DNA of 64,000 nucleotides, taken from Podarcis filfolensis (lineage: Eukaryota). The translations under genes and the position numbers were made by a program. Each line of letters opens with the position of its first letter. Within the stretch, counting starts at the first letter, position 1. The notes under the pieces are model-generated. The model saw nothing but the letters and a program-made list of their open reading frames with translations. It made no database searches and was not told the origin of the DNA. Below, piece by piece: positions 1-21,840 of the stretch. The stretch lies in the NCBI GenBank assembly GCA_964270895.1, contig OZ185435.1; one strand, 5' to 3'.

Positions 1-3000
1 GGATGGCGATCGCGAGGACATTAAGAGCATCCAGGCATCGGGCGGTACCATCTGCGATCACCCTCAAAAGGTGGAGTGCAGAGGAGTGGACTACAAAGAG
101 CTCAGCGCATCTGAACTTGGACAGAACATGATCTGCGATATCAACACTGGACTCCTTTGTGAGAATGCCAAACAGAAAGGGAAGTACAAGATCTGTTACG
201 ACTATGAGATGAGAGCACTGTGTTGCGACTACAAGCACTGTGAAACCACCCCAGCGCCACTGGTCACAACAAGTGCCACCACCACAGAAGCCCCAGGTAG
301 CACAGTGGGCAAGAGCACGGCTCCAGTATCCTCCACGGGCTCGACACCACCTCCTGTTGTTCCCACCACCACCGAAAGCACCACCCTTGTTTCCACAACA
401 CCAGGAGAAACCACAGGAAAGCCAACAACCACAGAAATACCAGGCAGCACGGCAGGCAAGAGCACGCCTCCAGCATCCTCCACGGGCTCCACGCCACCTC
501 CCGTTGTATTCACCACCACCGAAAGCACCACCCTTGTTCCGACAACTCCAGGAGTTACAACAAGAAAGCCAACCACCACCACCCACTCAACGCCGCTTTC
601 CACCCTCCCTCTCACAACACCAGGCTCAGTCAGCACTGCTGCCGTCTCCACTGGAGTGGTCCCCACGGTGACAGCCACAACACTCCAGTCCACTCCTGTT
701 TCCAAGCCTTCCTCAACAATACCCACCACCGGGACCACTGCACAAACCCCTCCAGGCCTGCTGACCACAACAACCACCCTGGCTCCCCTTGTTACCACTA
801 CACCAGGAAGCACCACTACCGGTTGCCAACCCAAATGCCAGTGGACCTCTTGGTTCAGTTTTCACACTCCAAGCTCCGACCCTGGGGATGGCGATCGCGA
901 GGACATTAAGAGCATCCAGGCATCGGGCGGTACCATCTGCGATCACCCTCAAAAGGTGGAGTGCAGAGGAGTGGACTACAAAGAGCTCAGCGCATCTGAA
1001 CTTGGACAGAACATGATCTGCGATATCAACACTGGACTCCTTTGTGAGAATGCCAAACAGAAAGGGAAGTACAAGATCTGTTACGACTATGAGATGAGAG
1101 CACTGTGTTGCGACTACAAGCACTGTGAAACCACCCCAGCGCCACTGGTCACAACAAGTGCCACCACCACAGAAGCCCCAGGTAGCACAGTGGGCAAGAA
1201 CACGGCTCCAGTATCCTCCACGGGCTCGACACCACCTCCTGTTGTTCCCACCACCACCGAAAGCACCACCCTTGTTTCCACAACACCAGGAGAAACCACA
1301 GGAAAGCCAACAACCACAGAAACACCAGGCAGCACGGCAGGCAAGAGCACGCCTCCAGCATCCTCCACGGGCTCCACGCCACCTCCCGTTGTATTCACCA
1401 CCACCGAAAGCACCACCCTTGTTCCGACAACTCCAGGAGTTACAACAAGAAAGCCAACCACCACCACCCACTCAACGCCGCTTTCCACCCTCCCTCTCAC
1501 AACACCAGGCTCAGTCAGCACTGCTGCCGTCTCCACTGGAGTGGTCCCCACGGTGACAGCCACAACACTCCAGTCCACTCCTGTTTCCAAGCCTTCCTCA
1601 ACAATACCCACCACCGGGACCACTGCACAAACCCCTCCAGGCCTGCTGACCACAACAACCACCCTGGCTCCCCTTGTTACCACTACACCAGGAAGCACCA
1701 CTACCGGTTGCCAACCCAAATGCCAGTGGACCTCTTGGTTCAGTTTTCACACTCCAAGCTCTGACCCTGGGGATGGCGATCGCGAGGACATTAAGAGCAT
1801 CCAGGCATCGGGCGGTACCATCTGCGATCACCCTCAAAAGGTGGAGTGCAGAGGAGTGGACTACAAAGAGCTCAGCGCATCTGAACTTGGACAGAACATG
1901 ATCTGCGATATCAACACTGGACTCCTTTGTGAGAATGCCAAACAGAAAGGGAAGTACAAGATCTGTTACGACTATGAGATGAGAGCACTGTGTTGCGACT
2001 ACAAGCACTGTGAAACCACCCCAGCGCCACTGGTCACAACAAGTGCCACCACCACAGAAGCCCCAGGTAGCACAGTGGGCAAGAGCACGGCTCCAGTATC
2101 CTCCACGGGCTCTACACCACCTCCTGTTGTTCCCACCACCACCGAAAGCACCACCCTTGTTTCCACAACACCAGGAGAAACCACAGGAAAGCCAACAACC
2201 ACAGAAACACCAGGCAGCACGGCAGGCAAGAGCACGCCTCCAGCATCCTCCACGGGCTCCACGCCACCTCCCGTTGTATTCACCACCACCGAAAGCACCA
2301 CCCTTGTTCCGACAACTCCAGGAGTTACAACAAGAAAGCCAACCACCACCACCCACTCAACGCCGCTTTCCACCCTCCCTCTCACAACACCAGGCTCAGT
2401 CAGCACTGCTGCCGTCTCCACTGGAGTGGTCCCCACGGTGACAGCCACAACACTCCAGTCCACTCCTGTTTCCAAGCCTTCCTCAACAATACCCACCACC
2501 GGGACCACTGCACAAACCCCTCCAGGCCTGCTGACCACAACAACCACCCTGGCTCCCCTTGTTACCACTACACCAGGAAGCACCACTACCGGTTGCCAAC
2601 CCAAATGCCAGTGGACCTCTTGGTTCAGTTTTCACACTCCAAGCTCCGACCCTGGGGATGGCGATCACGAGGACATTAAGAGCATCCAGGCATCGGGCGG
2701 TACCATCTGCGATCACCCTCAAAAAGTGGAGTGCAGAGGAGTGGACTACAAAGAGCTCAGCGCATCTGAACTTGGACAGAACATGATCTGCGATATCAAC
2801 ACTGGACTCCTTTGTGAGAATGCCAAACAGAAAGGGAAGTACAAGATCTGTTACGACTATGAGATGAGAGCACTGTGTTGCGACTACAAGCACTGTGAAA
2901 CCACCCCAGCGCCACTGGTCACAACAAGTGCCACCACCACAGAAGCCCCAGGTAGCACAGTGGGCAAGAGCACGGCTCCAGCATCCTCCACGGGCTCTAC

Positions 3001-6000
3001 ACCACCTCCTGTTGTTCCCACCACCACCGAAAGCACCACCCTTGTTTCCACAACACCAGGAGAAACCACAGGAAAGCCAACAACCACAGAAACACCAGGC
3101 AGCACGGCAGGCAAGAGCACGCCTCCAGCATCCTCCACGGGCTCTACGCCACCTCCCGTTGTATTCACCACCACCGAAAGCACCACCCTTGTTCCGACAA
3201 CTCCAGGAGTTACAACAAGAAAGCCAACCACCACCACCCACTCAACGCCGCTTTCCACCCTCCCTCTCACAACACCAGGCTCAGTCAGCACTGCTGCCCT
3301 CTCCACTGGAGTGGTCCCCACGGTGACAGCCACAACACTCCAGTCCACTCCTGTTTCCAAGCCTTCCTCAACAATACCCACCACCGGGACCACTGCACAA
3401 ACCCCTCCAGGCCTGCTGACCACAACAACCACCCTGGCTCCCCTTGTTACCACTACACCAGGAAGCACCACTACCGGTTGCCAACCCAAATGCCAGTGGA
3501 CCTCTTGGTTCAGTTTTCACACTCCAAGCTCCGACCCTGGGGATGGCGATCGCGAGGACATTAAGAGCATCCAGGCATCGGGCGGTACCATCTGCGATCA
3601 CCCTCAAAAGGTGGAGTGCAGAGGAGTGGACTACAAAGAGCTCAGCGCATCTGAACTTGGACAGAACATGATCTGCGATATCAACACTGGACTCCTTTGT
3701 GAGAATGCCAAACAGAAAGGGAAGTACAAGATCTGTTACGACTATGAGATGAGAGCACTGTGTTGCGACTACAAGCACTGTGAAACCACCCCAGCGCCAC
3801 TGGTCACAACAAGTGCCACCACCACAGAAGCCCCAGGTAGCACAGTGGGCAAGAGCACGGCTCCAGTATCCTCCACGGGCTCGACACCACCTCCTGTTGT
3901 TCCCACCACCACCGAAAGCACCACCCTTGTTTCCACAACACCAGGAGAAACCACAGGAAAGCCAACAACCACAGAAACACCAGGCAGCACGGCAGGCAAG
4001 AGCACGCCTCCAGCATCCTCCACGGGCTCTACGCCACCTCCCGTTGTATTCACCACCACCGAAAGCACCACCCTTGTTCCGACAACTCCAGGAGTTACAA
4101 CAAGAAAGCCAACCACCACCACCCACTCAACGCCGCTTTCCACCCTCCCTCTCACAACACCAGGCTCAGTCAGCACTGCTGCCCTCTCCACTGGAGTGGT
4201 CCCCACGGTGACAGCCACAACACTCCAGTCCACTCCTGTTTCCAAGCCTTCCTCAACAATACCCACCACCGGGACCACTGCACAAACCCCTCCAGGCCTG
4301 CTGACCACAACAACCACCCTGGCTCCCCTTGTTACCACTACACCAGGAAGCACCACTACCGGTTGCCAACCCAAATGCCAGTGGACCTCTTGGTTCAGTT
4401 TTCACACTCCAAGCTCCGACCCTGGGGATGGCGATCGCGAGGACATTAAGAGCATCCAGGCATCGGGCGGTACCATCTGCGATCACCCTCAAAAGGTGGA
4501 GTGCAGAGGAGTGGACTACAAAGAGCTCAGCGCATCTGAACTTGGACAGAACATGATCTGCGATATCAACACTGGACTCCTTTGTGAGAATGCCAAACAG
4601 AAAGGGAAGTACAAGATCTGTTACGACTATGAGATGAGAGCACTGTGTTGCGACTACAAGCACTGTGAAACCACCCCAGCGCCACTGGTCACAACAAGTG
4701 CCACCACCACAGAAGCCCCAGGTAGCACAGTGGGCAAGAGCACGGCTCCAGCATCCTCCACGGGCTCTACACCACCTCCTGTTGTTCCCACCACCACCGA
4801 AAGCACCACCCTTGTTTCCACAACACCAGGAGAAACCACAGGAAAGCCAACAACCACAGAAACACCAGGCAGCACGGCAGGCAAGAGCACGCCTCCAGCT
4901 TCCTCCACGGGCTCCACGCCACCTCCCGTTGTATTCACCACCACCGAAAGCACCACCCTTGTTCCGACAACTCCAGGAGTTACAACAAGAAAGCCAACCA
5001 CCACCACCCACTCAACGCCGCTTTCCACCCTCCCTCTCACAACACCAGGCTCAGTCAGCACTGCTGCCGTCTCCACTGGAGTGGTCCCCACGGTGACAGC
5101 CACAACACTCCAGTCCACTCCTGTTTCCAAGCCTTCCTCAACAATACCCACCACCGGGACCACTGCACAAACCCCTCCAGGCCTGCTGACCACAACAACC
5201 ACCCTGGCTCCCCTTGTTACCACTACACCAGGAAGCACCACTACCGGTTGCCAACCCAAATGCCAGTGGACCTCTTGGTTCAGTTTTCACACTCCAAGCT
5301 CCGACCCTGGGGATGGCGATCGCGAGGACATTAAGAGCATCCAGGCATCGGGCGGTACCATCTGCGATCACCCTCAAAAGGTGGAGTGCAGAGGAGTGGA
5401 CTACAAAGAGCTCAGCGCATCTGAACTTGGACAGAACATGATCTGCGATATCAACACTGGACTCCTTTGTGAGAATGCCAAACAGAAAGGGAAGTACAAG
5501 ATCTGTTACGACTATGAGATGAGAGCACTGTGTTGCGACTACAAGCACTGTGAAACCACCCCAGCGCCACTGGTCACAACAAGTGCCACCACCACAGAAG
5601 CCCCAGGTAGCACAGTGGGCAAGAGCACGGCTCCAGCATCCTCCACGGGCTCTACACCACCTCCTGTTGTTCCCACCACCACCGAAAGCACCACCCTTGT
5701 TTCCACAACACCAGGAGAAACCACAGGAAAGCCAACAACCACAGAAACACCAGGCAGCACGGCAGGCAAGAGCACGGCTCCAGCTTCCTCCACGGGCTCC
5801 ACGCCACCTCCCGTTGTATTCACCACCACCGAAAGCACCACCCTTGTTCCGACAACTCCAGGAGTTACAACAAGAAAGCCAACCGCCACCACCCACTCAA
5901 CGCCGCTTTCCACCCTCCCTCTCACAACACCAGGCTCAGTCAGCACTGCTGCCGTCTCCACTGGAGTGGTCCCCACGGTGACAGCCACAACACTCCAGTC

Positions 6001-7018
6001 CACTCCTGTTTCCAAGCCTTCCTCAACAATACCCACCACAGGGACCACTGCACAAACCCCTCCAGGCCTGCTGACCACAACAACCACCCTGGCTCCCCTT
6101 GTTACCACTACACCAGGAAGCACCACTACCGGTTGCCAACCGAAATGCCAGTGGACCTCTTGGTTCAGTTTTCACACTCCAAGCTCCGACCCTGGGGATG
6201 GCGATCGCGAGGACATTAAGAGCATCCAGGCATCGGGCGGTACCATCTGCGATCACCCTCAAAAGGTGGAGTGCAGAGGAGTGGACTACAAAGAGCTCAG
6301 CGCATCTGAACTTGGACAGAACATGATCTGCGATATCAACACTGGACTCCTTTGTGAGAATGCCAAACAGAAAGGGAAGTACAAGATCTGTTACGACTAT
6401 GAGATGAGAGCACTGTGTTGCGACTACAAGCACTGTGAAACCACCCCAGCGCCACTGGTCACAACAAGTGCCACCACCACAGAAGCCCCAGGTAGCACAG
6501 TGGGCAAGAGCACGGCTCCAGTATCCTCCACGGGCTCGACACCACCTCCTGTTGTTCCCACCACCACCGAAAGCACCACCCTTGTTTCCACAACACCAGG
6601 AGAAACCACAGGAAAGCCAACAACCACAGAAACACCAGGCAGCACGGCAGGCAAGAGCACGGCTCCAGCTTCCTCCACAGGCCCTACACCACCTCCTGTT
6701 GTTCACACCACCACTGAAAGCACCACCCTTGTTCCGACAACTCCAGGAGTTACAACAAGAAAGCCAACCACCACCACCCACTCAACGCCGCTTTCCACCC
6801 TCCCTCTCACAACACCAGGCTCAGTCAGCACTGCTGCCGTCTCCACTGGAGTGGTCCCCACGGTGACAGCCACAACACTCCAGTCCACTCCTGTTTCCAA
6901 GCCTTCCTCAACAATACCCACCACCGGGACCACTGCACAAACCCCTCCAGGCCTGCTGACCACAACAACCACCCTGGCTCCCCTTGTTACCACTACGCTA
7001 GAAATTACCTCTACTGTG
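1..7018 (+). repeat. 885-bp (295-aa) coding tandem repeat, ~8 units in window
   Basis: CysD start codons recur at 824, 1709, 2594, 3479, 4364, 5249, 6134 and, diverged, at 7019. Only scattered single-base differences separate the units. Confidence 0.97.
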
Positions 7019-8003
7019 TGCCTCCCTAAGTGTAACTGGACCTCCTGGTATGATTTGCACCGTCCTACCAGCAGTCCAGATGATGGCGATATAGAGAATT
7101 TTGAGACCATTCGAAAAGCTGGAGGAAATATTTGCAAACATCCACAAGACATTGAATGCAGAGCTGAGAATCACCCTGATGTCAGCCTGTATCTGCTTGG
7201 TCAGGAAGTGCAATGTAACCTCCATGTTGGACTTTTGTGCGAAAATTCAAAGCAAACCGACAAAATGTGTTATAACTTCCAGGTTAGATACCAGTGCTGT
7301 GAATACAAGCCCTGCCATCCTAGCACAACACCACTGAGCACACCTGCTGCTTCTACCACAGAAAAACCTGGCAGCACCGCTGGCAAAAGCACAACTCCAG
7401 CATCCTCCACGGGTTCTACGCCACCTCCCATTGTATTTACCACCACCCAAAGCTCCACTCTTGTTTCCACAACTCCAGGAGTAACCACAGGAAAGCCAAC
7501 GACCACAGAAACACCAGGCAGCACTGCTGGCAAGAGTACAGCTCCAGCATCCTCCACAGGTTCTACGCCACCTCCCATTGTATTCACCACCACCGAAAGC
7601 ACCACCCTTGTTTCTACAACACCAGGAGTAACCACAGGAAAGCCAACAACCACAGAAACACCAGGCAGCACTGCTGGCAAGAGTACAGCTCCAGTATCCT
7701 CCACAGCTTCTACACCACCTCCCATTGTAGTCACTACCACCCAAAGCACCACCCTTCTTTCCACCACTCCTGGAATTACAACAGGAAACCCCATGACCAC
7801 CATCCCTTTCTCAACCCCTGGCTCCGTCAGCACACCTTCCATCACTTCTGGAGTGGCTTCCACCGTTTCAACCACATCTCTTCCATCTACCCATGTTTCC
7901 ATACCTGTGTCGACGATATCCACTACTGGGATTACTGTAGAAACAGCAACTGTCCCTACCAGAGTGCCATTTTCCACTAAGCCTTTGGTCGTTGTTACAA
8001 CAG
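1..8003 (+). CDS. MUC5B: Mucin giant central exon, 3' part (5' end outside window): CysD + PTS tandem array
   Basis: Stop-free frame from base 2 (DGDREDIKS...). Ten-Cys CysD domains with WxxW alternate with Thr/Ser/Pro-rich tracts. Donor ACAG|GTAATT at 8003/8004, phase 1. MUC5B call rests on downstream exon similarity and adjacency to TOLLIP. Confidence 0.85.
7367..7807 (+). repeat. Three 147-bp (49-aa) PTS subrepeats after the terminal CysD
   Basis: PGSTAGKST... units start at 7367, 7514 and 7661. The same 147-bp module occurs twice in each 885-bp unit (e.g. 293 and 440). Confidence 0.9.
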
Positions 8004-8697
8004 GTAATTACAGAATGAATCTGCATATCCTGGTATGAAAATCTTGTTACCTTTGGTAAATATTCCAACGGTTAAATTTATTACATGTTACTCAATTACA
8101 GGTGTCATGCCAAATGTTAGCAAATTGTTTCATATTAATGGGGGCTTGGTGATCTTATTTCATATACCACCCTTTTCAAAAATTGGTATCTATCCCAATT
8201 ATGAAACCTAGTGTCTATCAGCTAGCAACTTATCAAAAATGTTTGCCTAGATCTCAGTGTGCATTTTTCAAAGAAGTTTTCAATGCTATTACAAGTAGTA
8301 GATAGCTCTCTGGCTAGATATTTGGAATTTTATTAACAGCACCTTTGGACTGGAGGGGTGTGTTTCTTGATACTGGGAGGAATATAGCTGGATTCCCCTG
8401 TTTCTTGATAGTATTGTAGGTGTATAATAAGAAAAGCAAGTAAGCAAAGTATTGATCTGATCCATTAAACTGGTTTTTGTAGTACAATTATCAAGTTAAA
8501 TTCTCCAGCCCTAAAGATACATGTAAGTCCGGTTGAGCTCAGTTGGAATTCTGAATTGTTATGCTTCAGTTGGTGCTTTGGAAGTGTACACTGAAGTCTT
8601 AAGTATCTACAGTGTTTAGCATCCATTTCCAGCAGTATGTCTTCAAGCAGTACGTAACAACTGTTATACATTTATTTCTTTTCTATTGTGTCTTCAG

Positions 8698-8811
8698 CAG
8701 CAACAAGTACTTCCATACCTTCTACAACAGGAACTACAACAGTCACTTTGAGCAGAACAACTCCATGTTTCTGCCGTGTGCCCGGATTTAGTAAGGGCTT
8801 GTTTTCTCCTG
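8698..8811 (+). CDS. MUC5B: Mucin exon: end of PTS + PCFC motif
   Basis: TTCAG|CAG acceptor, |GTGAG donor, 114 nt, phase 1-1. Encodes ...TTPCFCRVPGFSKGLFSPG, compared with human MUC5B PCFCRAFGQFFSPG. Confidence 0.9.
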
Positions 8812-9659
8812 GTGAGTTTCTCTTAATGAATTTGAAAAGCAGCTGAAGCAATGTTTTCATTCACATATTGCTTTGATTGTACATATGCTCAACATACGTC
8901 CTTCCTTATACCTACATCATGATTGTGCACCACTCTCCACAGGGGAGTCTACTTTGGTGCTCTGCTGTATAGTTTGAGGAGGAGTAGAAACCTTTTTACT
9001 TACTTTTTACATTTACATTTAAATCATTTTATTAATCCTGCTTTATCTGGGTTTTTTGTTTGTTTTTTGCAAGTTTGGGGCTGATATTTTCAATGCTTTA
9101 TTGAATTTATGTATCTGTGTTTTACTCTACACTGCTTTACATGTTTTAACAACCTAGGGAACAAAAGTATTAGCTGAGATGAATTCTGTAATTCTCTCAT
9201 GCCATAAATTCTTTGAACAGTATTGAACCACAGAGATGTCAATAGATCCATCTCTCACCTATCCCCTATCCCCTTTTACAACTGACTCATATTCATGTAC
9301 ATCTACTACTATCTGCCAGCCATTACTTTTAACAGGTGGCCAACATGTCCTTTTACTCCCTAGGATTGTGAGTCACAAGTTATACTTGTATATGATTTAC
9401 TGGCTAAGGACCAACTGGGGAAAAGGCCTTGGCTGAACCTCCTGCTGATCTCCCATGGTGGTGTGGGGTTGGAGCTTGCCCACTACAAATTACACAATCC
9501 AATGCATGCTTTCTCAGACTTGCTGCTGAGAGTTGCACTGCATGTCAGTAGACAAATTCATCTGAACTTTATTTGCATTTTAGAACGTTATGACATGTTT
9601 TGTTTTATAATTTTCGTACATGGTGCTTTATGATAAATTCCCTCCTTTTTTTAAAATAG

Positions 9660-9925
9660 GGGAAGTAATATACAATAGAACTGATAGTTCCGGATGCAGT
9701 TTTTATGCAGTTTGCAACAGAAGCTGTGAAATTGAGGTGTTCCAGGGACCATGTCCTTCAACAACTCCTTCCCACCCATCAACACCATCAGTTACAACTG
9801 CAGGAACCCAGCCTTCTCCGTCACCCACTACTGTTGTTCCATCAACCAGAGTATACACTACTGCAGCTGTATCAACCCCCACAACTCCTGTAACAGGTTG
9901 CCCTGATATTGATCCACCAAGAAAG
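9660..9925 (+). CDS. MUC5B: Mucin exon: pre-D4 Cys-rich segment + short PTS
   Basis: ATAG| ... AAG|GTGAT. Encodes GEVIYNRTDSSGCSFYAVCNRSCEIEVFQGPC...GCPDIDPPRK, compared with human GEVIYNKTDRAGCHFYAVCNQHC. Confidence 0.93.
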
Positions 9926-10463
9926 GTGATTAGCATTGTTTTCATACATACATTGGGGATAGCTTTTGCTAGCTGATGAGAGGCTGTAGCCCTAAACATC
10001 AAAAGGGCTCCATGTTGGGGAAAGCTGTTGGCTACCAAATGCCTCTCTCACTCCATTTTCACCCATCTTAAAAACCATCAAATGAATCCTCTCTTGGTGA
10101 ACGAGGTGTCTATGTTGAAAAGAAAATCCTGACTACCCCAGGGACTTTTGCCCACAATTCATGCTGTATGAGCACCACTGTTTTGGGTGGTATGAGGAGC
10201 TGTTATGTGAACATGCACTTGGTCACAATCAACTCTCTTGTTATAGATCTTATTTGTGCTATTGATCTCACTGAAAATGGATGGGGATCTTGATGTTACT
10301 GCATTCAAAGTCTCATTATCCCTGACCACTGGTGGTTGGAACTGGTGGGAACTGGAATCCAACAACTTTGGGTAGGCTACAGGTTGCCTACCCCTGCCAC
10401 AGAGTCATATATGGAGAAATCTCAAGTCCATTCCGAATGTTCTTGTTTGCCTCACTTTTCTAA

Positions 10464-10650
10464 AACATAGCAAGCTGGCTTATACCAAGGCAGACTATGG
10501 GTCTATCTATCTCACTCTTGTCCTTGTTGACTGCTAATGACTCCTCAGGGTTTCATATAGGAGTCTTCCCTGGGGCTATCTGGAGTTGCTAAGGATTAAA
10601 CATGGGACCTTTTGCATGCACACCATGTGCTCTACCATTGAGAAACAGCC
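10464..10650 (-). mobile_element. tRNA-derived SINE with CR1-type tail, degenerate
   Basis: The reverse strand begins with a tRNA-like head (GGCTGTTTCTCAATGGTAGAGCAC...AAGGTCCCATGTTTAATCC) and ends ...CCAGCTTGCTATGTT, resembling an abundant squamate SINE. Family assignment is from memory. Confidence 0.55.
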
Positions 10651-10784
10651 TCTCCCCCTAACACCCCATTTTGCCTCCAGATGGGTTTTCCTCTTCCAGT
10701 AGGACAAGAACCCTTGGTAGTGGAGATGGTGTCTTTCTAAGAGTATGACACTTGTAGAATATTTTCTCTCTGGTTTCCCTCTAG

Positions 10785-10953
10785 ACCAATGAAACTTGGA
10801 TGTTTAACAACTGCACTGTGGCAACTTGTGAAGGAAACAACAAAATAGTTCTGAAGCCGCAACCACCTGTAGAGAAGACAGTATGTGTGAGTGGACTCCC
10901 ACCGATAAAAATAGTAGATAAGGATGGCTGTGTCGAACGCTATGAATGTGAAT
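10785..10953 (+). CDS. MUC5B: Mucin exon: Cys-rich module preceding VWD4
   Basis: CTAG| ... T|GTAAG, 169 nt. Encodes TNETWMFNNCTVATCEGNNK...DGCVERYECE. Confidence 0.93.
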
Positions 10954-11518
10954 GTAAGTATAACTGAGCATTCAGAAAAAGTACATATATCTTTATGATA
11001 TGGAATGAGAGATTAAGATATTTAACTTACAGGACTGTATCATACAAAGCTCAGGGGGTGTAATGTCATGCAGTTGCAATTCCATTTATTGAGGGAGGTG
11101 AGACTTTTGAGGGTCTTTCAGGGAAGGCTATGGATTTGCAGAAGCCTAAACCTCTTGTTTCTCTAGCATACTCCTAAAAAAGTCAATGGGTGGCTTTTCG
11201 TATTTCAATGGAAAGGAGTAAGGGAGAAAATGCTGTGATTCAACCAATTCCTGTCCTGGCTGTCACTAGTCATCAGGACTCTGGCTATGGCAGTTGTTTC
11301 ACCACAAAATCTGCACCATCAACATTGCTCTCCTAGAATTCTCTTATTATTCCCACTTTCTAATTGGTGTACCAAACTAGGACCTAGGCCATCAAAGTTA
11401 ATACAAGCAACAGCATAATAACCAATGATTTCACAGTGTATATTTACTTTGGTTACTCTGGTTCGCTCAAGACTACACTCCAGGTGAACCTTATTTGATC
11501 TTTTGATTTCTGTTACAG

Positions 11519-11766
11519 GTATTTGCACTGGTTGGGATGCTAACTATCTGACATTTGATGGCACTTATTACACTTTCTATGACAACTGCACTTACATCTT
11601 GGTGAAAGAGATTGTGAATATACATGGAAACCTCAGTGTTTTGCTTGACAATTATTTCTGTGATGTCACTAACAATCAGCCCTGTTCCAGAGCCATCATT
11701 GTAAATTACAACTCAATGGAAGTTGTGCTAAGCAGCGAAGTGCATGAAGGAGTGAGAATTAACAAG
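11519..11766 (+). CDS. MUC5B: Mucin exon: VWD4 first half
   Basis: ACAG| ... AAG|GTAC, 248 nt. Encodes CICTGWDANYLTFDGTYYTFYDNCTYILVKEI...LDNYFC. Confidence 0.95.
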
Positions 11767-12058
11767 GTACTGTGTGCCACAGATTTCTCAAACTGTGTCA
11801 GCTTCCTACAATAATTATTTTTTACCAAAACAAAAATGTCAAAATGACATTTATAAACCAGCTAATGGGTTGTAAAATTTACATAACAATCATGGCAAAG
11901 TGCCTGTTTGAGGAATGCTACTTAATCCCATGATGTAGATTATGTTTAGGATTGAGATGCTGTTCCTCAAACTGTGCATCTCTATAATGACTACTCAGAA
12001 GAAAGCCCCCACTGAGTTTAATGCACTTTACTTCCAGTTAATGGTTATAGAATCAATG

Positions 12059-12110
12059 ACATATGCGCACACACACATATATATGCATGTGTGTGTGTGT
12101 GTGTGTGTGT
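12059..12110. repeat. Alternating purine-pyrimidine compound microsatellite
   Basis: (CA)n(TA)n(TG)n run, 52 bp of unbroken R/Y alternation. Confidence 0.9.
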
Positions 12111-12310
12111 TTTCAGTTAAAAACTATGGCTTACTGTTTTTAATTAAATACAATAACACAGTAAAATCATCATTGCAGTATTAAAAGTAGTATAAAAACA
12201 GGCAGCTAGGAAATATCAGCATGGCCAGGACTGATTGCCCTCAAGTGCTCTGGAAGACTCTGAATCCTCCAGATTTATATTCTTTTGCCTCTTTTGTGCT
12301 GCTGTTTCAG

Positions 12311-12494
12311 ATTTTTTTCAACCATGAGCCGGTCAATGGAGATTTCACCAAATATGGTATTTCTGTCACCAGTACTGGAACTGTCATGAGTGTCGAAATC
12401 CCTGCACTCCAAGCTTTTATATCTTTCAACGGGCTCACTTTCTCAATAAAACTCCCCTTTGACCTATTTCAGCATAACACAGAGGGGCAATGTG
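12311..12494 (+). CDS. MUC5B: Mucin exon: VWD4 second half
   Basis: TCAG| ... G|GTAAG, 184 nt. Encodes IFFNHEPV...FNGLTFSIKLPFDLFQHNTEGQCG. Confidence 0.95.
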
Positions 12495-12630
12495 GTAAGT
12501 AAAGGGATCAAAACATCCCCAACCATTCAAATCCTTTTTCACAATGTTATTCCTTCAAAACAAATTTCTTTGCATAGGAAGATGTGGAGCATTAGAAAAG
12601 CAATAAAGAAAAATTAACCATTGGGGGGAG

Positions 12631-12940
12631 GGGCCACAGCTCCATGGCCGAACACATGTGTGTGGTGTTAGACCATCCCAGGTCCAGTTCCTGGTATCTA
12701 CATCTGAAAGTTCTTGGGATGAAGAAAGAACTGCTGCCCATCAGAGTAGACCTAATTGGGCTTAGTGGACCTATGGTTTGACCAGGCTTCCTCAACCTTG
12801 GCCCTCCAGATGTTTTTGGCCTACAACTCCCATGATCCCTAGCTAGCAGGACCAGTGGTCAGGGGTGATGGGAATTGTAGTCTCAAAACATCTGGAGAGC
12901 TGAGGTTGAGGAAGCCTAGGTTTGACTAATATATCCATAC
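12631..12940 (+). mobile_element. Degenerate copy of the same SINE, split by a hAT MITE
   Basis: GGGCCACAGCTCC...TCCCAGGTCCAGTTCCTGG head, then CTGCTGCCCATCAGAGTAGAC...TGGACCTATGGTTTGAC; the sequence resumes after the MITE. Confidence 0.45.
12783..12918. mobile_element. hAT hairpin MITE (136 bp)
   Basis: TIRs CAGGCTTCCTCAACCT / AGGTTGAGGAAGCCTA; perfect 8-bp TSD GGTTTGAC. Confidence 0.92.
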
Positions 12941-13103
12941 TGAAGAGTAGGAAACAGAATATGCATATAAGGTACACTTTATGATAGCAACAATGGCTTT
13001 TTCAATTAGGAAGTCCGCTTCGTTATTTCAATGTCATTCAGAGTGACACTAATGTATACTGCATATTCAGCACACTTATGATGTGACCCTTTCTCTCTCC
13101 TAG

Positions 13104-13335
13104 GGGTATGTTCAAATGACAAGACAGATGACTGCCGCCTCCCCAACGGCCATGAAGCTTCCTCTTGCTCAGAAATGGCCAGCTACTGGAAGACCTACGA
13201 TAAAAACAAGCCCCATTGCTATGGAGTACCAACAACATCACCTCCGACAACAACACCGCATGAGCCAAGAACGACAACACCAGCACCAACACCCTGCACC
13301 ACTCCATCTCCTCTGTGTGAGCTGATTGTGAGCGA
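13104..13335 (+). CDS. MUC5B: Mucin exon: VWD4 end, Pro/Thr linker, start of C8
   Basis: CTAG| ... GA|GTAAG, 232 nt. Encodes GVCSNDKTDDCRLPNG...SCSEMASYW...PCTTPSPLCELIVS. Confidence 0.93.
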
Positions 13336-13675
13336 GTAAGTTCAACACAGCCTTTACAAATGCTTCGGCTGTTAGATCCTGCAGAGCAAGCTATCGCTTT
13401 GACAACGTTATTTTTTAAAAAAACCCACTTCTGATGAACACATAGGAACATAAAATCATCACCAAGACATTGTGCACATGACCTCATCTGTCCAGCTTGT
13501 GGGCAGGACATAAGCCACTGGTTGACCACAGGACTAGAAAGATAAAGCTTTGGTCTGCTCCAGCAGAGCTTTTCACCTTATATTCTTATGTTTTTATCTA
13601 CTGCTAGGACATGAGGAATGTTTTCTAGGGATAGATAACACCCTTTTCCTTTATTGTTCTTATATTTCACAGATG

Positions 13676-13677
<2 letters not shown>

Positions 13678-13726
<49 letters not shown>

Positions 13727-13790
13727 TTATTTGTACCCCGCCCTCCCCAGCCGGAGCCAGGCTCAGGGTGGCTAACATCATAAAACTAAC
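13678..13790 (-). mobile_element. LINE (L2-like) 3' tail with (AAT)15 microsatellite
   Basis: The reverse strand reads GTTAGCCACCCTGAGCC...GGGGAGGGCGGGGTACAAATAAATTTATTATT..., a typical squamate LINE 3' end. (AAT)15 spans 13678-13722. Confidence 0.6.
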
Positions 13791-14093
13791 ACAGTACACA
13801 AAGAACATAAGATCCATCCAACAATAAGCATGGCATTGTTTTAGTATCTTCAAGGCATCTCGGCTACCTTATATACCATAAAGAGCTATAACATTGCAAC
13901 ACTGTAGGATTTTTAATTCCATAGTAATACAAAGCTGATCTTTCTAGAATTGATATCATTGTGAAATGTACTGTACATATTTGCTAAGAATATTATCCTT
14001 TCAGTCGCAGTTTCATACTGAAAATGGGGTGGCAAGGGGACATTGCAATATTTATGAGCCATAGTTCAACCATGTATTCTTTTGTATTTGAAG

Positions 14094-14272
14094 TGTCTTT
14101 GAAGAATGCCATAAGGTTCTGCCTCCCAGAATATACTATGAAGACTGCCTCCTTGAAGCCTGTCAGTCTTCCAATGATTCTGTGCCTTGCTACAATTTGG
14201 AGATATATGCTTCCCTCTGCATAGCTAAAGGGGTTTGTACTGACTGGAGGAACATGACGCTAGGAAAATGCC
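14094..14272 (+). CDS. MUC5B: Mucin exon: C8 domain
   Basis: GAAG| ... C|GTAAG, 179 nt. Encodes DVFEECHKVLPPRIYYEDCLLEAC...AKGVCTDWRNMTLGKC. Confidence 0.93.
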
Positions 14273-14995
14273 GTAAGTGGAAGACAACGTATTTTCGCTT
14301 ATCCTAAAGTGAGCAGCAATTTATCGTAGAGCAATAATAGCTGGGTGAACCAATCAATCAACCATTCAAAACGGTGTCAGCAGATGAATAGTAATCAATG
14401 CAAACTGAACAATAGCATGTTCTAACTGCAGTTGCATGTTTGTTTCCCTCAGTCTTTGTCTTTTTTTCACAAGAATTAAGATTTCAGCTTCTGCACTTCA
14501 TAGTGGATTGAATCCAGAAGGGAAGGGAAGTTGACTTTTGCTAATTGCTCCATCTCCCTGAAGCCCATTGCAACCTCTGAAACTACTCCAGAGGGTTGGA
14601 GGATCCTCCAGATCAACATGGGAGGTGGCACTGCAAGAGGATGGGGGAATTGGCAAACGTTGCCTCCTTCTCTTTCCACCAACAGGTTTTCTCCACTGGA
14701 TTAGAATCCATCTGTGGATGTCTGTATTGAATCCATGTTCTCAGCTATGGATATTTCCATTTGTCAGTCAGGATTGAGCATGCACTGGGGCTTACAACAG
14801 TCCTCTGGGTGTGGGTGTGCCTTGCCTTGGCAAACGCCACTCCTTCATTCAATCTGATGCCAACCATAGATGCTTTATGTGATTTTTTAAAAAGCTAATG
14901 GGAAAAACATAAGATGGCAACATGTAATACATAGTTCTGCCTCATGTTGGAGTCTTTCTGCTTTTTAATGACACATTTTATTCTCTTATATACAG

Positions 14996-15065
14996 CATAC
15001 CACTGCCCCAAAGACAAGGTGTACAATGCATGTGGCCCCATTCACCCTGTCACCTGTGATGATGG
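14996..15065 (+). CDS. MUC5B: Mucin exon: TIL first half
   Basis: ACAG| ... GG|GTATG, 70 nt. Encodes PYHCPKDKVYNACGPIHPVTCDD. Confidence 0.92.
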
Positions 15066-15960
15066 GTATGTATTAACTAAATAATTAGCTCTCTGAATGC
15101 TAATGGCTGCACTTTTGTATCTTTGAATAAGAGACAAATATGAAATACGTATATGACTTGCTAGAAAATGGTGAATGTATAAAGGTCATATCAAGATCTT
15201 TATATGAAGATCTTTAATTAGTTAGTATCATCCCAAGTATGGCAGCAGCGGATAGTTGATGTGTTAATTATTAGGGGAATGTTGCATTAATTAATAGGAT
15301 TTGTTTAAAAAAATGCATTATCTATTTATATGGTCATTAATTCCATGTCAATTCCTCCCCAAATAATTATGATTGCCAGCTTCAGGTTTTTAACCCTGGT
15401 TAAACTGCATTCTTTGCTGGTAGATACTTTAAACCTGCCAGAGCCTGAGCAGTTCCCACCACAGAAGTCCCTGCCTTGGTCTTTCAACTCTACTCATTTT
15501 ACAAGGATGTTTTCAAGATCCAGTCAGTCCTCCAGGGCACCATAAACCTTTTCAGGTTCTCCAGGCCCTATCCCTATGGCTAATCCAGGGCATGGTAATT
15601 CTAATGTTTGGTGCTAAACACGTCTACCCTGGAATCACATACTTGCTTGTACTCTGCACAAATTAATGAGGCAAGAGTACAAATACTGTATAGGCCACAT
15701 AAATGGATTAGCATGCTTACCTGATACCATAAATCATGGTAATGTTGAATAGTTATTCTAGCTTTAATTCTCTCTATTCAGCTTGGTTACCTTAAGTCAA
15801 GGGTGTTAAAAGGTGGGGTCCGTCCCAAATTAAGTAAAGCAGAGCAGGTGAAAAGAGTTTAAAGCCAGGATAACTATTCCGCATTACCTTGTTCTTAGCT
15901 CAAAAAAGGGATTCTGTTTCAACCCTGATCCCATGCATAGTAAAATTGGATAGCATTGTA

Positions 15961-16173
15961 CAGTGGTACCTCGGGTTAAGTACTTAATTTGTTCCGGAGG
16001 TCCGTTCTTAACCTGAAACCGTTCTTAACCTGAAGCACCACTTTAGCTAATGGGGCCTCCTGCTGCTGCCGCGCCGCCGGAGCATGATTTCTGTTCTTAT
16101 CCTTAACCCGAGTTACTATTTCTGGGTTAGCGGAGTCTGTAACCTGAAGCGTATGTAACCCAAAGTACCACTG
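15961..16173. mobile_element. Tc1/mariner (Tigger-like) MITE, 213 bp
   Basis: TA|CAGTGGTACCTCGGGTTA ... TAACCCAAAGTACCACTG|TA; internal GTTCTTAACCTGAA repeats. Confidence 0.92.
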
Positions 16174-16357
16174 TAAATAGATTAAGAAAGATCCTTTCAA
16201 AGATTTCTTCCTTCTAGTGTAGTGTTTGCAGCTTGAGCACAGTGGCCTGGCAGACTAGCTTTCACTGGTTTAAATTGGGGGTGGAGAAGTGACAGCCCAT
16301 AGGCCAGATTCAGCCTACAGCACTTTTGACCTGAGTGGTTCAGTGTGCACTGTTAAT

Positions 16358-16443
16358 CTGCAACCATATGCACACTTACTTGAGAGTAAGTGCCATTGAC
16401 CTGAAAAACTTATTTCTGAGTAGACATGCAAATAATTGTGCTG
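16358..16443. mobile_element. ~86-bp short dispersed element (MITE-like)
   Basis: Aligns end to end with 62878-62963 (GAGTAAGT.CCATT...ACTTATTTCTG.GTAGACATGCA...ATTGTGCTG). Confidence 0.55.
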
Positions 16444-16695
16444 ACCGGATTCCCAACACACAATTCTTACTCTTAACATAAACTGTTGCAATTAACCTGT
16501 TGTCTCTTATTATGCCATCTATAGTGAATGGCTCCAGTATTTATTTACTTCTTAGGAAAGCGCCAATTTTCTTTTGCATTTAAATACTGTAATCCCTTAG
16601 AAAAATAGTGTTTTTACGAAGGTGAGCATTGAAGCTATTAAACTGTTTGATTACAGAACTGGAAATAATATTATCTGCTCTTCTTTTCCTTGCAG

Positions 16696-16796
16696 ACCAA
16701 CCAAAGATACAAGTGAGCATGTTGCTGAAGGATGCTTCTGCCCAGAGGACAAAATCCTCTTCAATACATACACGGATATCTGTGTCAAAACATGTG
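16696..16796 (+). CDS. MUC5B: Mucin exon: TIL second half
   Basis: GCAG| ... G|GTAAG, 101 nt. Encodes PTKDTSEHVAEGCFCPEDKILFNTYTDICVKTC. Confidence 0.93.
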
Positions 16797-17728
16797 GTAA
16801 GTTTCTCTATTCCTGATCGGCTAATTATGTCAATTTAAACCAAAAGCAGATGCATAATTAAAGGTATTGGAGTTCATCAGCAAATGATTGGCCCTTTACT
16901 GGCCAAATTACCAGGAAGGTCAACTCAATTCTATGTTAAACATTTGCTGGGAGATAAAATCCCACAAGTTTTAAAGACAGCAGTCAAATTTCTGTTGGTG
17001 GCTGTGACAATAAGAAGTCAGTTAACCACCTAAAGCTGGAAGGATTATTTCCAGGGCTTACCTGAAGCTATTTGCTATTTTGTATATTTGCTAGTTTTTA
17101 TTTTCTAAGCTGCTGTTACTATGCTACGCTTGTCCTGTATGGTTTATTTCTGGTCTGTTGCCCCTAATAAACAGCTTATGAAGATCATTAGAGGTGGTAT
17201 GTGGAAGGGCAATCCTCTACTTATCTGCTTAGAGGTGTGTGCATGTGTATAATTAGGGCCTAAATAACACAAGGATAACTTTAGCTTTTTCTAACATTTG
17301 CATGTCTTTCTGTAATTTCAAATTATGTCTGTAAACTCAAAATGAGCAGCTGACCTGCAAGGGGCATGACACAAGTGGTGAAGAATAGCAGGATGCTATG
17401 GCATCCTCAGCATCCATTTCCTTCTGTGGTTACACATAAATGCTCCGTTCCATGTGATGAAATTAAGTTTTACTACTATGTGGTTAATACAGTATTGTTA
17501 TGCCTGTATTTTTATTATACTGCATGGAGGTATGTTTTTAAAGAACAACCCAGGAAGAATCCTGTAAAAATTCAGCATGTGGTGAAATTCTCTGTATAAA
17601 CTGGTTACTTAGCTGGGAAAAGCTGCATAATAATGGCTACAGGAAACTTGTGTTAAAGTTAAGGCAGTTTACATGTTTATGGAATATAAGGGATCTGTAT
17701 GAATTCTTATGCCTTTATTTATTTCCAG

Positions 17729-17760
17729 GCTGCGTGGGACCAGACGGATTGCCCAAACCA
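17729..17760 (+). CDS. MUC5B: Mucin 32-nt micro-exon
   Basis: CCAG| ... CCA|GTGAG. Encodes GCVGPDGLPKP, compared with human CVGPDGFPK; a 32-nt exon is characteristic of these mucins. Confidence 0.92.
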
Positions 17761-18079
17761 GTGAGTATTTCACTTGGAAAGATTATGCCTAGACCATTGC
17801 CTATACACAGGCAACATAGAGAATCATCCAGAACTGACAAGGGACTAATAATTGGACCCACTATGACTGCAATACCCTGCACCCCTGCACATACATTCAC
17901 AAGGCGGCAAACTGTTATTATTAGTGCTAAACTTCTGCTTTACCAGACAAGGGCATCATTTTATATTGTAGTAGGAGTCGGAGATCATTTCAGATTTTAG
18001 GAGGGAGGGTAAAGTCATGTGGGGAGGGAGAGAATTCACAATATTTTATTTTATTTAGTTTCTTGCTATTGTTATACAC

Positions 18080-18081
<2 letters not shown>

Positions 18082-18120
<39 letters not shown>
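18082..18120. repeat. (TG)19 microsatellite
   Basis: Read directly from the sequence. Confidence 0.95.
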
Positions 18121-18121
<1 letters not shown>

Positions 18122-19028
18122 GGAGAATAACCAAAAGAAAGCAATAGAAGTCATTGAAACTTTTCTTTGTAGCTTTGTAGTTTTGTAGCTTTGTAGATTT
18201 GTAGTTTTGGTATGCATAACTGGCATGTACCAGTAGATCCAGATAATTATTATCAACATGCAGAAATAGTGAGCTGGTCAGAAACATAGAAGTGCTTCTG
18301 AAGGAGAAGCAGACATAGTCTGAAATACCAGCCTCTCCTGGGCTCTATAGCTGTCAGATGGATTGTACAGCACACTTTCCAGCCCCCTTTGGATTGAGAG
18401 GTACACCAGTTGTCCCCTGAAGCCTTTGAAACATCAGATTAGACACGCTAATATTAATGGGCCAAACTTAGTCATGTCCATCAATTTCAATGGGTCTATT
18501 CTGAGTAGGACTAACATCTAATGCAACACTTTGTGATCTCAAAGAAAGACTTTGCATGGAAGTGATGGAAATTAAAATAGCAGCTGGTAGAGGTTGTGGT
18601 CTCCATCGTAAGTACTTTGCTTGGGTTTCAGAAGAAGACCAACAAGACTTTCAGAGGACTCAGAAGGCCATGCCTAAGGCACATATAGAACCAATGCTAT
18701 ATATGTGCATCTCCCTGAAACAGCCTAGAAGGAAATTTAACCTGGTTCAGCATAACTTTCTGTATCTTATAATTTAAGGAAGTCTTTTTATAGCCATTTG
18801 TGGGGTGGTGGAAACAATCCTTAAGAAGCACCTTCAAGTTGTATTGTATGGCTCTGGTCCAAAGCTTATTGCACAGTTACCGTAAGTTTGATATTACAGG
18901 AAACTTAAGATCAACTAGGTGCCCCTTCTAAAGAAAGCTTAAGGTCTAATAATTGACAAGTAAGCAGATGATGATAGGTTTCATTGCTGCCATACAGTGT
19001 TAAATGATTTGCTTTCTTTTTCATATAG

Positions 19029-19206
19029 CCTGGCTCCTCATGGAAGAGCAACTGTCAAGAGTGTATTTGTGACCCATTGACTGAGAGCGTCCAGTGCAAG
19101 CCACAGACCTGTGTGTCATCGGAACCACCCAAATGTGAGAAAGAAGGGTTTGTGCCCGTCCCTGTGCTGACACCAAAAGACCCGTGCTGTCCAGAACTTC
19201 AATGCA
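19029..19206 (+). CDS. MUC5B: Mucin exon: VWC-like module
   Basis: ATAG| ... A|GTACG, 178 nt. Encodes PGSSWKSNCQECICD...DPCCPELQC. Confidence 0.93.
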
Positions 19207-19724
19207 GTACGTATTTGCATGTATTATTTATTGATGGCCAATGCCAATCAATCCAATTCGGCCCTCTGTTGATGAAACAATTTGTGCTATTATGGTTACT
19301 GTTGCTTTGGTTGAGGGGGAAACACAGACATCCAGACAGCATTACATGTTGGCAGGTAATATCAGTTGCACAATTCTATCCCAACTTAATTATCTCTATA
19401 GTAAATAACCACACAGAGGAATCTGTAAAAAATACAAAAAACAAACAAACCATTTTCTCTTGTCATATGGGGACTGACAGGCAGATAAAGAGTTAAATCT
19501 CTGGGTTTGGATGCTTTGCTCACCATATAGTCAAAAGAGCTTTACTACAATTAACCTGCAATTCTACATACATTAACTTGGCAGTATGTCCTTCAACCTT
19601 AGTAGGAATTTTTGACAGAAATCTGCTTAGGACTGGAGGACTTGTCAGAAACAGGAGATTTGCTAGTCTCCTTTCCCTCCTTTACAATATGATCTGAAGG
19701 CAAGCTAAGTCAATTCTGAAATGT

Positions 19725-19870
19725 ATTTATTTATTTAATGCATTTTTAGTCCACCTGTTAGCCAGAAAAAGGCTTGCAGCAAAACTTACAATGATCAGTA
19801 ATAAGACAGTCCCTGCCCCAGGTCTTGACATATAACAGACCTGGCATGAGAGGGAAAGGAAGCGGTGGGC
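19725..19870 (-). mobile_element. L2-like LINE 3' fragment
   Basis: TTTATTTATTTA tail, then AAGACAGTCCCTGCCCCAGG, resembling the amniote L2 3' motif AGACAxxGTCCCTGCCCTC. Confidence 0.5.
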
Positions 19871-20338
19871 GGGGGGGGGGGGGTAGGCATACTCAGACCT
19901 TGGATCTTACTGTTCTTTTTAGCCTGGAGGGGTGAAACAAGCTTATTGTGGATGGTGGATGGGTGGGGATTGGCTAGGTCTCCCACTTGCCACAATGGCC
20001 AGCTTGGGAGGCAAGGGGAGTAAACTGCTAGCAGCTTTTAATGCCCTGGAGTATGCTGTCCTTCAGCTCTACAATACTAGCGTGTGACGTGTTGGGCGGT
20101 GAGTGGGTATGTATGTGTCAAACCTCCTTCAGCTGTTTTTTCTCTGGCTGATGGAGGGAGCCATGCTGGTCTTCCTTGTGCATACCTACGCAACCCCAGT
20201 ACACTCTCACCCACCAGTCATGATACTGAATAGGATTATTGTCCTAGCACCACAGGAATATTTGCTGGTCTAAACATTTAAGGCTGGGGTGCTAGACTTG
20301 CTTCTTCAGCTCTGTTATGTTTTCTGATTATTCCACAG

Positions 20339-20443
20339 AATGCAATACTACTACCTGCTCCAACGAAAAGAAACCTTGTGAACTTGGATACGAGGCAACC
20401 CCAGTCCTGCTTGAAGGAGACTGCTGTGTCAGCTTTCCCTGTA
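20339..20443 (+). CDS. MUC5B: Mucin exon: VWC-like module
   Basis: ACAG| ... A|GTAAG, 105 nt. Encodes KCNTTTCSNEKKPCELGYE...EGDCCVSFPC. Confidence 0.93.
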
Positions 20444-20639
20444 GTAAGTGCTAGCATTCTGACATGTAGAGAGAGAAAGTAGATGAGAGAGATTAAAACA
20501 TCAAGTTAGGCTGAACCCAGACATAATTTACGTACAGTGGAAGCATTCCACACTCCCCTCCTTAAAACAAACAAACAAAAATGTTGCCATTAAAACATTT
20601 TAGAAACTGAAGACACATTCTGGAGTGCAGCGTCAAACA

Positions 20640-20958
20640 GTATGAACTACACTTCAAAGCCACCTTGGACTAGTGTCAGACTAAAAGCTGGAGAAACTCA
20701 TCTTCAAAATTCCACTAGGCCGCAAAGCTCATTGAGTAACTTCGGGCCAGTCACTGTGTACACAAAATACCTTTAAAGCACATTATTTCCTCCAAAAGAA
20801 TTCTGGCCACTGTAGTTTACCCCTCGCAGTTAAAATTCCTGGCAACCTTTAACAAACCACAGTGCCTAACATTCCCTGAGGGAAAGAACATGTTTCAAAT
20901 GTGCTTTACAGTTTTATCTCTCACCTGAATCCATTTCACAGGATTGTTGTGATGGTAA

Positions 20959-20996
<38 letters not shown>

Positions 20997-21055
20997 TGGG
21001 AGGGACTATATACATTGCCTTAAGCAATAAATAAATACACACGCAGCTGTGAAAC
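20640..21055 (+). mobile_element. MIR-like SINE interrupted by a ~160-bp MITE and a (GT)17 run
   Basis: GGGCCAGTCACTGT is followed by an insert (~20757-20917, ends TTTAAAGCACATT / AATGTGCTTTA), then CTCTCACC...CACAGGATTGTTGTG and an AATAAATAAA tail. (GT)17 spans 20961-20994. Confidence 0.5.
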
Positions 21056-21200
21056 AATAGCAACATCAAATTGATCCCCCACCCACTTAATTTAGGCAGG
21101 TGAAATGAAGAAAGCCTAGGGGGATGAGGATCCAGGAATGGACCTTATAAACATAATTTCCCCACCATATTTTAAAGTAATTGTCTGTTTCTGTTTTCAG

Positions 21201-21244
21201 TACCAATCCCAGATGTCTGTCTTGTCAATGGAACACTTTACAGG
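21201..21244 (+). CDS. MUC5B: Mucin 44-nt exon
   Basis: TCAG| ... AGG|GTAAG. Encodes IPIPDVCLVNGTLYR; phases fit both neighbouring exons. Confidence 0.9.
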
Positions 21245-21479
21245 GTAAGAATGCGAGTTTTATGTCTACATATACTATGTACACAGATTAAAATCCTTCT
21301 TTTCTATTGTTCCCTATTCAGTCGTAGGCAGAGACTGTAGCAACAGCAGTAGCAGCAGCCGGACTTTGAAATTAATTTCAAGGGGTACCTGTCAAGTCAA
21401 AGCAATGCTGTTTGAGCATGCTTTTTTTTATATACTGATTTTCAGACATATTTATTATACCTTTCAACTGTGCAGGTTC

Positions 21480-21840
21480 TCAAGAGTAGCTAAAAACAAC
21501 CAAAAAGGAACGTGAAATGGCAGAACCGCCAAACTATAAGAACAGATGTTAAAACCACATAATATAAAACACCATAAGGTTCTGGGGAGATAAAAGAAGG
21601 TTATTTTGGCTTCGTACCAAAAAGACATTGAAGTCAGTGCTAGGTGAGCTTTCCTGAGGAGGGTGTTCCAGAGGAGGAAAATGGCAATGGCACCCACCTG
21701 AGAGGAGCTAGAACGGAGTTCCGGCAAGTTCCAGCTGAAAAAAATCCTTGCCTGTCACCCTTACTGGCCATTGGGCATGCTGACTGGGGCTGGGGGAAGT
21801 TGGAGCCCAACACCTAGAGGGCCACGGCTTGCACCTCCCT
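21480..21840. mobile_element. Cluster of fragments: L2-like piece plus two half hAT MITEs
   Basis: L2-like ~21590-21670. 21675-21750 ends CCAGCTGAAAAAAATCCTTG (TIR-like). 21762-21840 ends GAGGGCCACGGCTTGCACCTCCCTG, the right half of the hairpin hAT family. Confidence 0.4.

Follow-up and report, generated by a model that had tools for sequence, protein, structure and literature searches.

The 64,000-nucleotide (nt) stretch of Podarcis filfolensis DNA analysed here (contig OZ185435.1), which we refer to as the window, opens inside the large central exon of a mucin gene. Our analysis indicates that positions 1–8003 very probably represent the 3′ part of the MUC5B central exon, that they encode a block polymer of CysD domains and proline-, threonine- and serine-rich (PTS) spacers kept uniform by concerted evolution, and that this is the normal squamate architecture.

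Structure of the array

Tandem Repeats Finder and a repeat finder gave a period of 885 nt, with eight in-register copies starting at 1, 886 and so on to 6196. Frame 2 is the only open frame, running from 2 to 8035 (2678 codons), and within this single frame positions 1–6996 amount to 7.9 units of 885 nt, or 295 amino acids (aa). Any two of units 1–7 differ at 2–9 of 885 nt (0.2–1.0%), with no insertion or deletion. Unit 8 differs from the other units at 44–48 nt, in a small cluster at columns 484–520 and densely from column 802 onward; 33 of the 54 variable columns lie in columns 802–885 and are private to this unit. Because the divergence of unit 8 becomes dense at column 802, the homology of the array ends at about 6996, rather than at 7018 or 7080. 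The collapsed high-depth contigs of two sequencing runs (X1 and X2, described below) also stop at 6996, with array-type loose ends. The exon ends at CAG/GTAAT (8003/8004), and the closest gene model, P0120, departs from the open reading frame after the residues VVVTT. The features of this exon are as follows.

1–6996, plus strand: homogenised tandem array, 7.9 × 885 nt, with exact 885-nt spacing
2–241, plus strand: partial array-type CysD (residues 22–101), truncated by the window start, from the frame-2 translation
824–6436, plus strand: seven complete array-type CysDs (PF13330) of 303 nt (101 aa), each followed by a 582-nt (194-aa) PTS spacer; CysD starts at 824, 1709, 2594, 3479, 4364, 5249 and 6134 (824 + 885k)
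6997–7018, plus strand: diverged lead-in standing in place of the last part of unit 8, the array boundary (columns private to unit 8)
7019–7315, plus strand: terminal CysD, 99 aa (PF13330, E 2e-25), orthologous to the last CysD in lacertid MUC5B models
7316–8003, plus strand: last PTS, up to the exon end at 8003, with three 147-nt subrepeats at 7355–7800 (3.0 copies, 89% matches)

The window thus holds nine CysDs (one partial, seven complete of the array type and one terminal). Each 194-aa spacer is 47% serine plus threonine and 15.5% proline, lacks cysteine, and contains two 147-nt (49-aa) subrepeats. A preliminary description of this DNA had counted at least eight indel-free units of one CysD and about 194 aa of PTS, and at least nine CysDs with the terminal copy included; both counts held, and a pattern of this sort cannot have arisen by chance. 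It had also placed the continuation of the array upstream of the window, which is borne out because the window begins within a CysD and because the full-length models of close relatives contain 8–13 array units.

One observation on the last PTS comes from a 4993-nt contig of X1, a sample of the same species. This contig is two letters off the window and omits exactly 147 nt within 7548–7696, that is, one of the three subrepeats. Either the length is polymorphic here or the short-read (de Bruijn) graph has collapsed the subrepeats.

The array-type CysD matched the Pfam family PF13330 (Mucin2_WxxW) over profile positions 1–88 of 88 with an E value of 1.2e-23, and the terminal CysD matched it with an E value of 2.2e-25; both scored well above the cut-off of 22.4 bits. 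Ten cysteines and the motif WTSW are present in all eight complete CysD copies of the window. In addition, the array CysD is similar to the solved domains of human MUC5AC (8ov0, E 7e-24) and human MUC5B (8oer, E 3e-21), with the cysteines aligned. The CysD of human MUC2 has five intradomain disulfides and self-associates non-covalently (PMC3195396). By homology to these studied domains, the lizard CysD would be expected to have five internal disulfides and to self-associate.

Concerted evolution of the units

To place the units in context, we used lacertid MUC5B gene models from Podarcis muralis (XP_077781284.1, P0157), Podarcis lilfordi (CAI5763235.1, P0154), Lacerta agilis (XP_032992005.1, P0156) and Zootoca vivipara (XP_060132378.1, P0158), together with the 6229-aa model P0120. 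All eight window units read D at CysD position 40 and K (codon AAA) at position 53, where E and P stand in every array unit of P. muralis, P. lilfordi, L. agilis and Zootoca; the single exception is the last array unit of Zootoca, which reads D at position 40. A similar picture emerged from X13, a sample of an organism (D) that diverges from the window by about 1.1% in the intron. It carries 13 substitutions at full collapsed depth, at each of which the eight units of the window are uniform for the other letter, and seven of the 13 are synonymous. Overall, the divergence of units between species (about 2%) is greater than that within the array (0.2–1.0%). The variants within the array comprise 10 synonymous and 10 non-synonymous changes, which are too few to speak on selection.

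The edges of the arrays behave differently from their interiors. The array-wide K>E change of P. lilfordi is present everywhere but in the last array unit, and the first array unit of P0120, the closest model, retains the ancestral E. In the unit trees, interior units cluster by species (SH-aLRT, the Shimodaira–Hasegawa-like approximate likelihood ratio test, 85–98). This does not hold for the last array unit of P. muralis or of P. lilfordi, each of which is placed apart from its own species group. The terminal CysD modules, taken from six taxa, unite in one clade (support 100). Furthermore, 10 of 15 informative site pairs among the window units failed the four-gamete test, and the variants form a mosaic of the kind to be expected if the units recombine by unequal exchange or by conversion. 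Taken at the level of sequence comparison, the uniformity of the units is due to concerted evolution of the array.

The preliminary description had offered a recent expansion or concerted evolution as the source of the uniformity. The second part agrees with the species-specific array-wide substitutions, the lag at the edges and the mosaics. The first, in the form of one very recent duplication burst in this lineage instead of ongoing homogenisation of an old array, we consider highly unlikely, even though the differences among units (0.2–1.0%) are below the 1.1% intron divergence from organism D. The 294/295-aa unit is common to Zootoca, Lacerta and Podarcis, which implies that the array is old and has been continually homogenised, and a single recent burst is insufficient to explain it. 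Since Zootoca, Lacerta and three Podarcis lineages all have at least five copies of that unit, the array is older than the separation of these lineages, and each of them has its own array-wide substitutions. Related samples each retain about 8–12 copies. Finally, an array that already existed and underwent conversion or unequal exchange would be expected to keep ancestral residues in its edge units, as is seen, and the failures of the four-gamete test likewise count against a burst.

Array length and assembly

As a check on the assembly, we compared read depth over positions 6196–12195, which include one unit and single-copy intron, in three Logan runs (X1, X2 and X13) and in raw Hi-C reads (X24). 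The k-mer depth of the collapsed unit contigs in X1 was 99–124, relative to 12.6 in the flank (7.9–9.8×). For X2 the collapsed unit contig had a depth of 119.9 and the flank 10.6 (11.3×), and for X13 the values were 90–104 and 9.1 (10–11.5×). The raw Hi-C reads gave about 8 in the array and about 1 in the flank. These ratios, roughly, fit 8–12 units, and gross inflation or collapse of the array in the assembly is excluded. The comparison of read depth with single-copy sequence that had been proposed as a check therefore came out in favor of the assembly.

Array length differs between species. The number of array units per lacertid gene model is six in Zootoca, eight in P. muralis, eight in L. 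agilis, 12 in P0120 and 13 in P. lilfordi, and one unit of P0120 is short by exactly one 49-aa subrepeat (246 aa, as opposed to 295 aa in the window). The preliminary description had called the array a probable variable number tandem repeat. This stands for changes between species, with 6–13 units and a 147-nt subrepeat indel between close relatives; within-species variation is a conjecture, though a probable one.

Several points weigh against the interpretation that we prefer. The depth ratios are rough, since the depth of a contig cannot be read as a copy number and bubbles depress the means, and they are weakened by a guanine-plus-cytosine (GC) content of 55% in the array as compared with about 40% in the flanks. 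The window opens inside the array and shows only that this genome has at least eight units. The models from other species are automatic annotations of assemblies that may mis-resolve the array, and older and newer models disagree: the old model of P. muralis has a 388-aa unit, as opposed to 295-aa units throughout in the new one, and the models of Zootoca have seven or eight CysDs. Moreover, a pattern like that of ongoing homogenisation would also arise if single units had expanded repeatedly in recent times.

Some of these points would also be expected if the array were an assembly artefact, in which a few real units had been over-copied or a longer array had collapsed. Near-identical 885-nt repeats are difficult to assemble, the models of P. 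muralis and Zootoca changed between releases, and the X1 contig of the same species lacks one 147-nt subrepeat. We nevertheless regard an artefact as very improbable. The collapsed unit exceeds the single-copy flank in depth by a factor of 8–12 in the three Logan runs, and of about 8 in the raw reads, in agreement with the eight or more units counted in the window; a mosaic of 20 real variants runs among the units, which are therefore not blind copies; and the 294/295-aa array is common to six lacertid gene models from five species. As a practical warning, unit counts of such exons vary between assemblies and annotation releases. That purifying selection on every unit separately keeps the units alike, with no exchange of DNA, has next to no likelihood: the cysteines and WxxW motif of the CysD do not vary and the composition of the PTS is constrained, but selection at the protein level cannot account for the seven synonymous array-wide differences, as it cannot spread silent changes, and unit divergence between species exceeds that within the array.

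The same architecture in other squamates, a bird and a turtle

The comparison was extended to related squamates and to birds, as the preliminary description had proposed. Strict periodicity with one CysD per unit is the rule in squamate MUC5B-type models, with neighbouring units 94–100% identical (lower in Anolis). Periodic arrays of 5–13 units, most of them near-identical, were found in models from Gekko, Euleptes, Elgaria, Tiliqua, Rhineura, Anolis, Lacerta, Zootoca and other Podarcis. The arrays outside the lacertids were as follows.

Gekko kuhli, MUC5B type: 13 × 250 aa, 98–100% identical
Euleptes, MUC5B type: 13 × 247 aa
Elgaria, MUC5B type: 12 × 236 aa
Tiliqua, MUC5B type: 8 × 212 aa and 4 × 334 aa
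Rhineura, MUC5B type: 246- and 385-aa units
Hemicordylus, MUC5B type: 273-, 286- and 394-aa units
Anolis sagrei, MUC5B type: 8 × 266 aa, 81–96% identical
Pogona, MUC5AC type: 12 × about 206 aa
Heliangelus (hummingbird), MUC5AC type: 10 × 181–182 aa
Caretta (turtle), MUC5AC type: 4 × 230 aa

These arrays differ from the lacertid array in that unit length is lineage-specific, the PTS sequences are not alignable across families, and in some of them the units fall into two classes or form higher-order patterns. The overall design is the same in the MUC5B-type genes of gecko, skink, anguid and lacertid and in the MUC5AC-type genes of Pogona, hummingbird and turtle. The novelty that the preliminary description implied is not sustained, as periodic arrays of near-identical CysD and PTS units are standard in squamate MUC5B models, an outcome that the description itself had listed among those that would refute it. 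Judged from these models, the uniform CysD–PTS array is what this gene ordinarily carries in squamates.

Both unit length (212–385 aa) and unit number (6–13) turn over fast in squamate MUC5B arrays, and the congeneric Podarcis models have 8, 12 and 13 units. Surface residues of the CysD also change array-wide, with three replacements per 101 aa at a neutral divergence of about 1%.

Identification of the gene

MUC5B is an airway-type, gel-forming mucin of the MUC6–MUC2–MUC5AC–MUC5B cluster. Among the protein matches of the window, P. muralis “Mucin 5B” (94% for the unit and 95–100% for the C-terminal exons) and Zootoca vivipara “mucin-5B-like” ranked best. The C-terminal exons were compared singly by reference sequence, each exon as a separate search. 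Several short C-terminal exons had no Pfam match and were placed by alignment to the lacertid models, and TIL and VWC were likewise recognised only through this alignment. The part of the window downstream of the central exon has the following arrangement.

8709–27376, plus strand: about 18 C-terminal exons of the mucin gene, to the stop codon, collinear exon by exon with the lacertid models
11521–11772, plus strand: VWD4 exon (Pfam VWD, 3e-12)
14095–14271, plus strand: C8 exon (Pfam C8, 9e-14)
19029–19205, plus strand: VWC-like exon (lacertid model alignment)
25640–25753 and 27203–27376, plus strand: cystine knot exons, followed by the stop (Pfam Cys_knot/DAN)
36873–51372, minus strand: TOLLIP, tail-to-tail with the mucin gene (translations and Pfam CUE)
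36873–37160, minus strand: last exon of TOLLIP, with the CUE domain (Pfam CUE, E 7e-15)
within 46415–46723, minus strand: TOLLIP linker exon (translation)
within 51121–51372, minus strand: TOLLIP early exon (translation)

The VWD4 domain of the window starts with CTGWDANY (11533–11547), where the GDPH form reads C.GWGDPHY, and the lacertid models likewise read CTGWDANY. GDPH is reportedly an autocleavage site, according to Lidell and Hansson. It is absent in all squamate relatives of the window mucin, which read GWD at this place. Among mammalian MUC5B models in which the motif was found, 7 of 7 read G(D/N)xH, where x is not P. The MUC5AC- and MUC2-named models with the motif found keep GDPH, except for one Otolemur model named MUC5AC, whose motif is identical to that of Otolemur MUC5B. 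Thus, the loss of GDPH in VWD4 seems to be characteristic of MUC5B-type genes and not something peculiar to the window genome.

In most vertebrates, Muc5b and Tollip are tail-to-tail neighbours, and in trees the Muc5 proteins of birds and reptiles cluster together (Lang et al. 2016, PMC4948705). Because of this grouping, the name MUC5B rests here on synteny. The N-terminal part of the protein, where the D1–D2–D′–D3 assembly would be expected, falls outside the window. The TOLLIP synteny, the VWD4 without GDPH and the best matches, taken together, point to the mucin gene of the window as the Muc5b positional orthologue of a Podarcis-type lacertid, and the MUC5B-type assignment made in the preliminary description agrees with all three. 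Database names for relatives of this mucin are inconsistent (5B-like, 5AC and 5AC-like), and a second practical warning is that automatic MUC5 names are unreliable in sauropsids. The P. lilfordi model P0154, for example, carries the name “mucin-5AC” though it is the TOLLIP-side gene without GDPH.

Other features of the window

In three runs, a short interspersed repeat at 10594–10642, in an intron of the mucin gene, reached a depth of 150–225, as compared with about 10–13 next to it, and many different loose ends appeared at both of its borders. Just 3′ of the mucin stop, positions 28500–29450 are GC-richer (about 45%) and contain long open stretches on both strands that have no recognisable domain. 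A run of 173 N at 32534–32706 is an assembly gap or a masked stretch. On the minus strand, a 115-aa open stretch at 55370–55714 resembles the C-terminal part of ORF2 of a CR1/L2-type long interspersed nuclear element and had no Pfam match. The first exon of TOLLIP was not found; the GC-rich stretch at about 62–63 kb may be the promoter region of this gene.

Proposed function and mode of evolution

We propose that a single large exon of wall-lizard MUC5B encodes a block polymer in which 101-aa CysD knobs alternate with 194-aa spacers. The spacers should be densely O-glycosylated and extended, and the knobs, by homology to the studied CysD/CYS domains, would make weak reversible contacts between mucin chains. 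The number and spacing of the CysDs would thereby help to set the stiffness and mesh size of the gel. CysD forms non-covalent dimers, which were proposed in 2011 as cross-links that set pore size (PMC3195396), and a poly-CYS protein reduces the mesh size of mucus (PMC6861317). The earlier idea that a polymer of stickers and spacers could set mesh size agrees with this published CysD/CYS work. At the DNA level, unequal crossing-over and gene conversion in the tandem array very probably continue to carry variants through all units, and the same two processes alter the number of units and add or remove 147-nt subrepeats. The units at the edges of the array and the terminal CysD module largely escape this homogenisation.

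It is possible to go further and to read the turnover of CysD–PTS units as adaptive tuning of mucus mesh or adhesion, or as a within-population polymorphism with a phenotypic effect, a reading that we consider unlikely. If it were true, polymer models of mucus could be tested against a natural series of sticker–spacer mucins in lizards, each exactly periodic. As a discovery, the array has small value: the gene, its domain plan and near-identical models from sister species are already public, and there are published accounts both of concerted evolution in mucin CYS domains and of the part that these domains play in mesh size. It is, rather, a clean, teaching-grade case, in which the exact period of the units, the silent changes that separate the entire arrays of congeners and the lag of the edge units show homogenisation inside a coding exon.

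Comparison with lacertid models and human mucins

The lacertid models resemble the window in their 294/295-aa unit of CysD and PTS, in their diverged terminal CysD and in the CTGWDANY of VWD4. They begin with a non-array CysD1 and end with the diverged terminal CysD. Their C-terminal exons are 95–100% identical to those of the window, and P0120 shares 99.4% identity with it in the terminal module. They differ from the window in that each species has its own array-wide substitutions, and none matches the window translation exactly. We considered P0120 as the model of the window genome itself and rejected it, as it differs at 2 of 329 residues in the terminal module and at 3 of 58 in the last exon and contains one 246-aa unit. 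It is treated here, from these sequence differences, as the probable product of a close relative.

Human MUC5B has seven CysDs, each placed before a PTS domain, of which CysDs 2–6 are nearly identical and the PTS bodies uneven, and human MUC5AC has nine CysDs (PMC9712336, PMC11912381). The statement of the preliminary description that human MUC5B has seven CysDs in a less uniform arrangement agrees with both sources. The copy number of CysD and PTS domains varies among human haplotypes (PMC9712336; PMC11344006).

Human MUC5B and MUC5AC are like the lizard array in their single large exon, in the alternation of CysD and PTS and in the near-identity of their internal CysDs. However, the human units are longer and uneven, with PTS bodies of 10–22 short repeats, whereas the lizard units are equal to the residue. 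The lizard PTS is without such a short-repeat body and has just two 49-aa subrepeats. The human MUC5B central exon is reportedly organised in a “super-repeat”, a description that is said to go back to Desseyn in 1997 (cited in PMC9712336). A later article by Desseyn (2009, Mol Phylogenet Evol 52:284; cited in PMC6861317) is said, by its title, to hold that mucin CYS domains evolved in concert. Compared with what this title conveys, the evidence from lizards concerns whole units of CysD and PTS between congeners, with silent sites and edge effects included.

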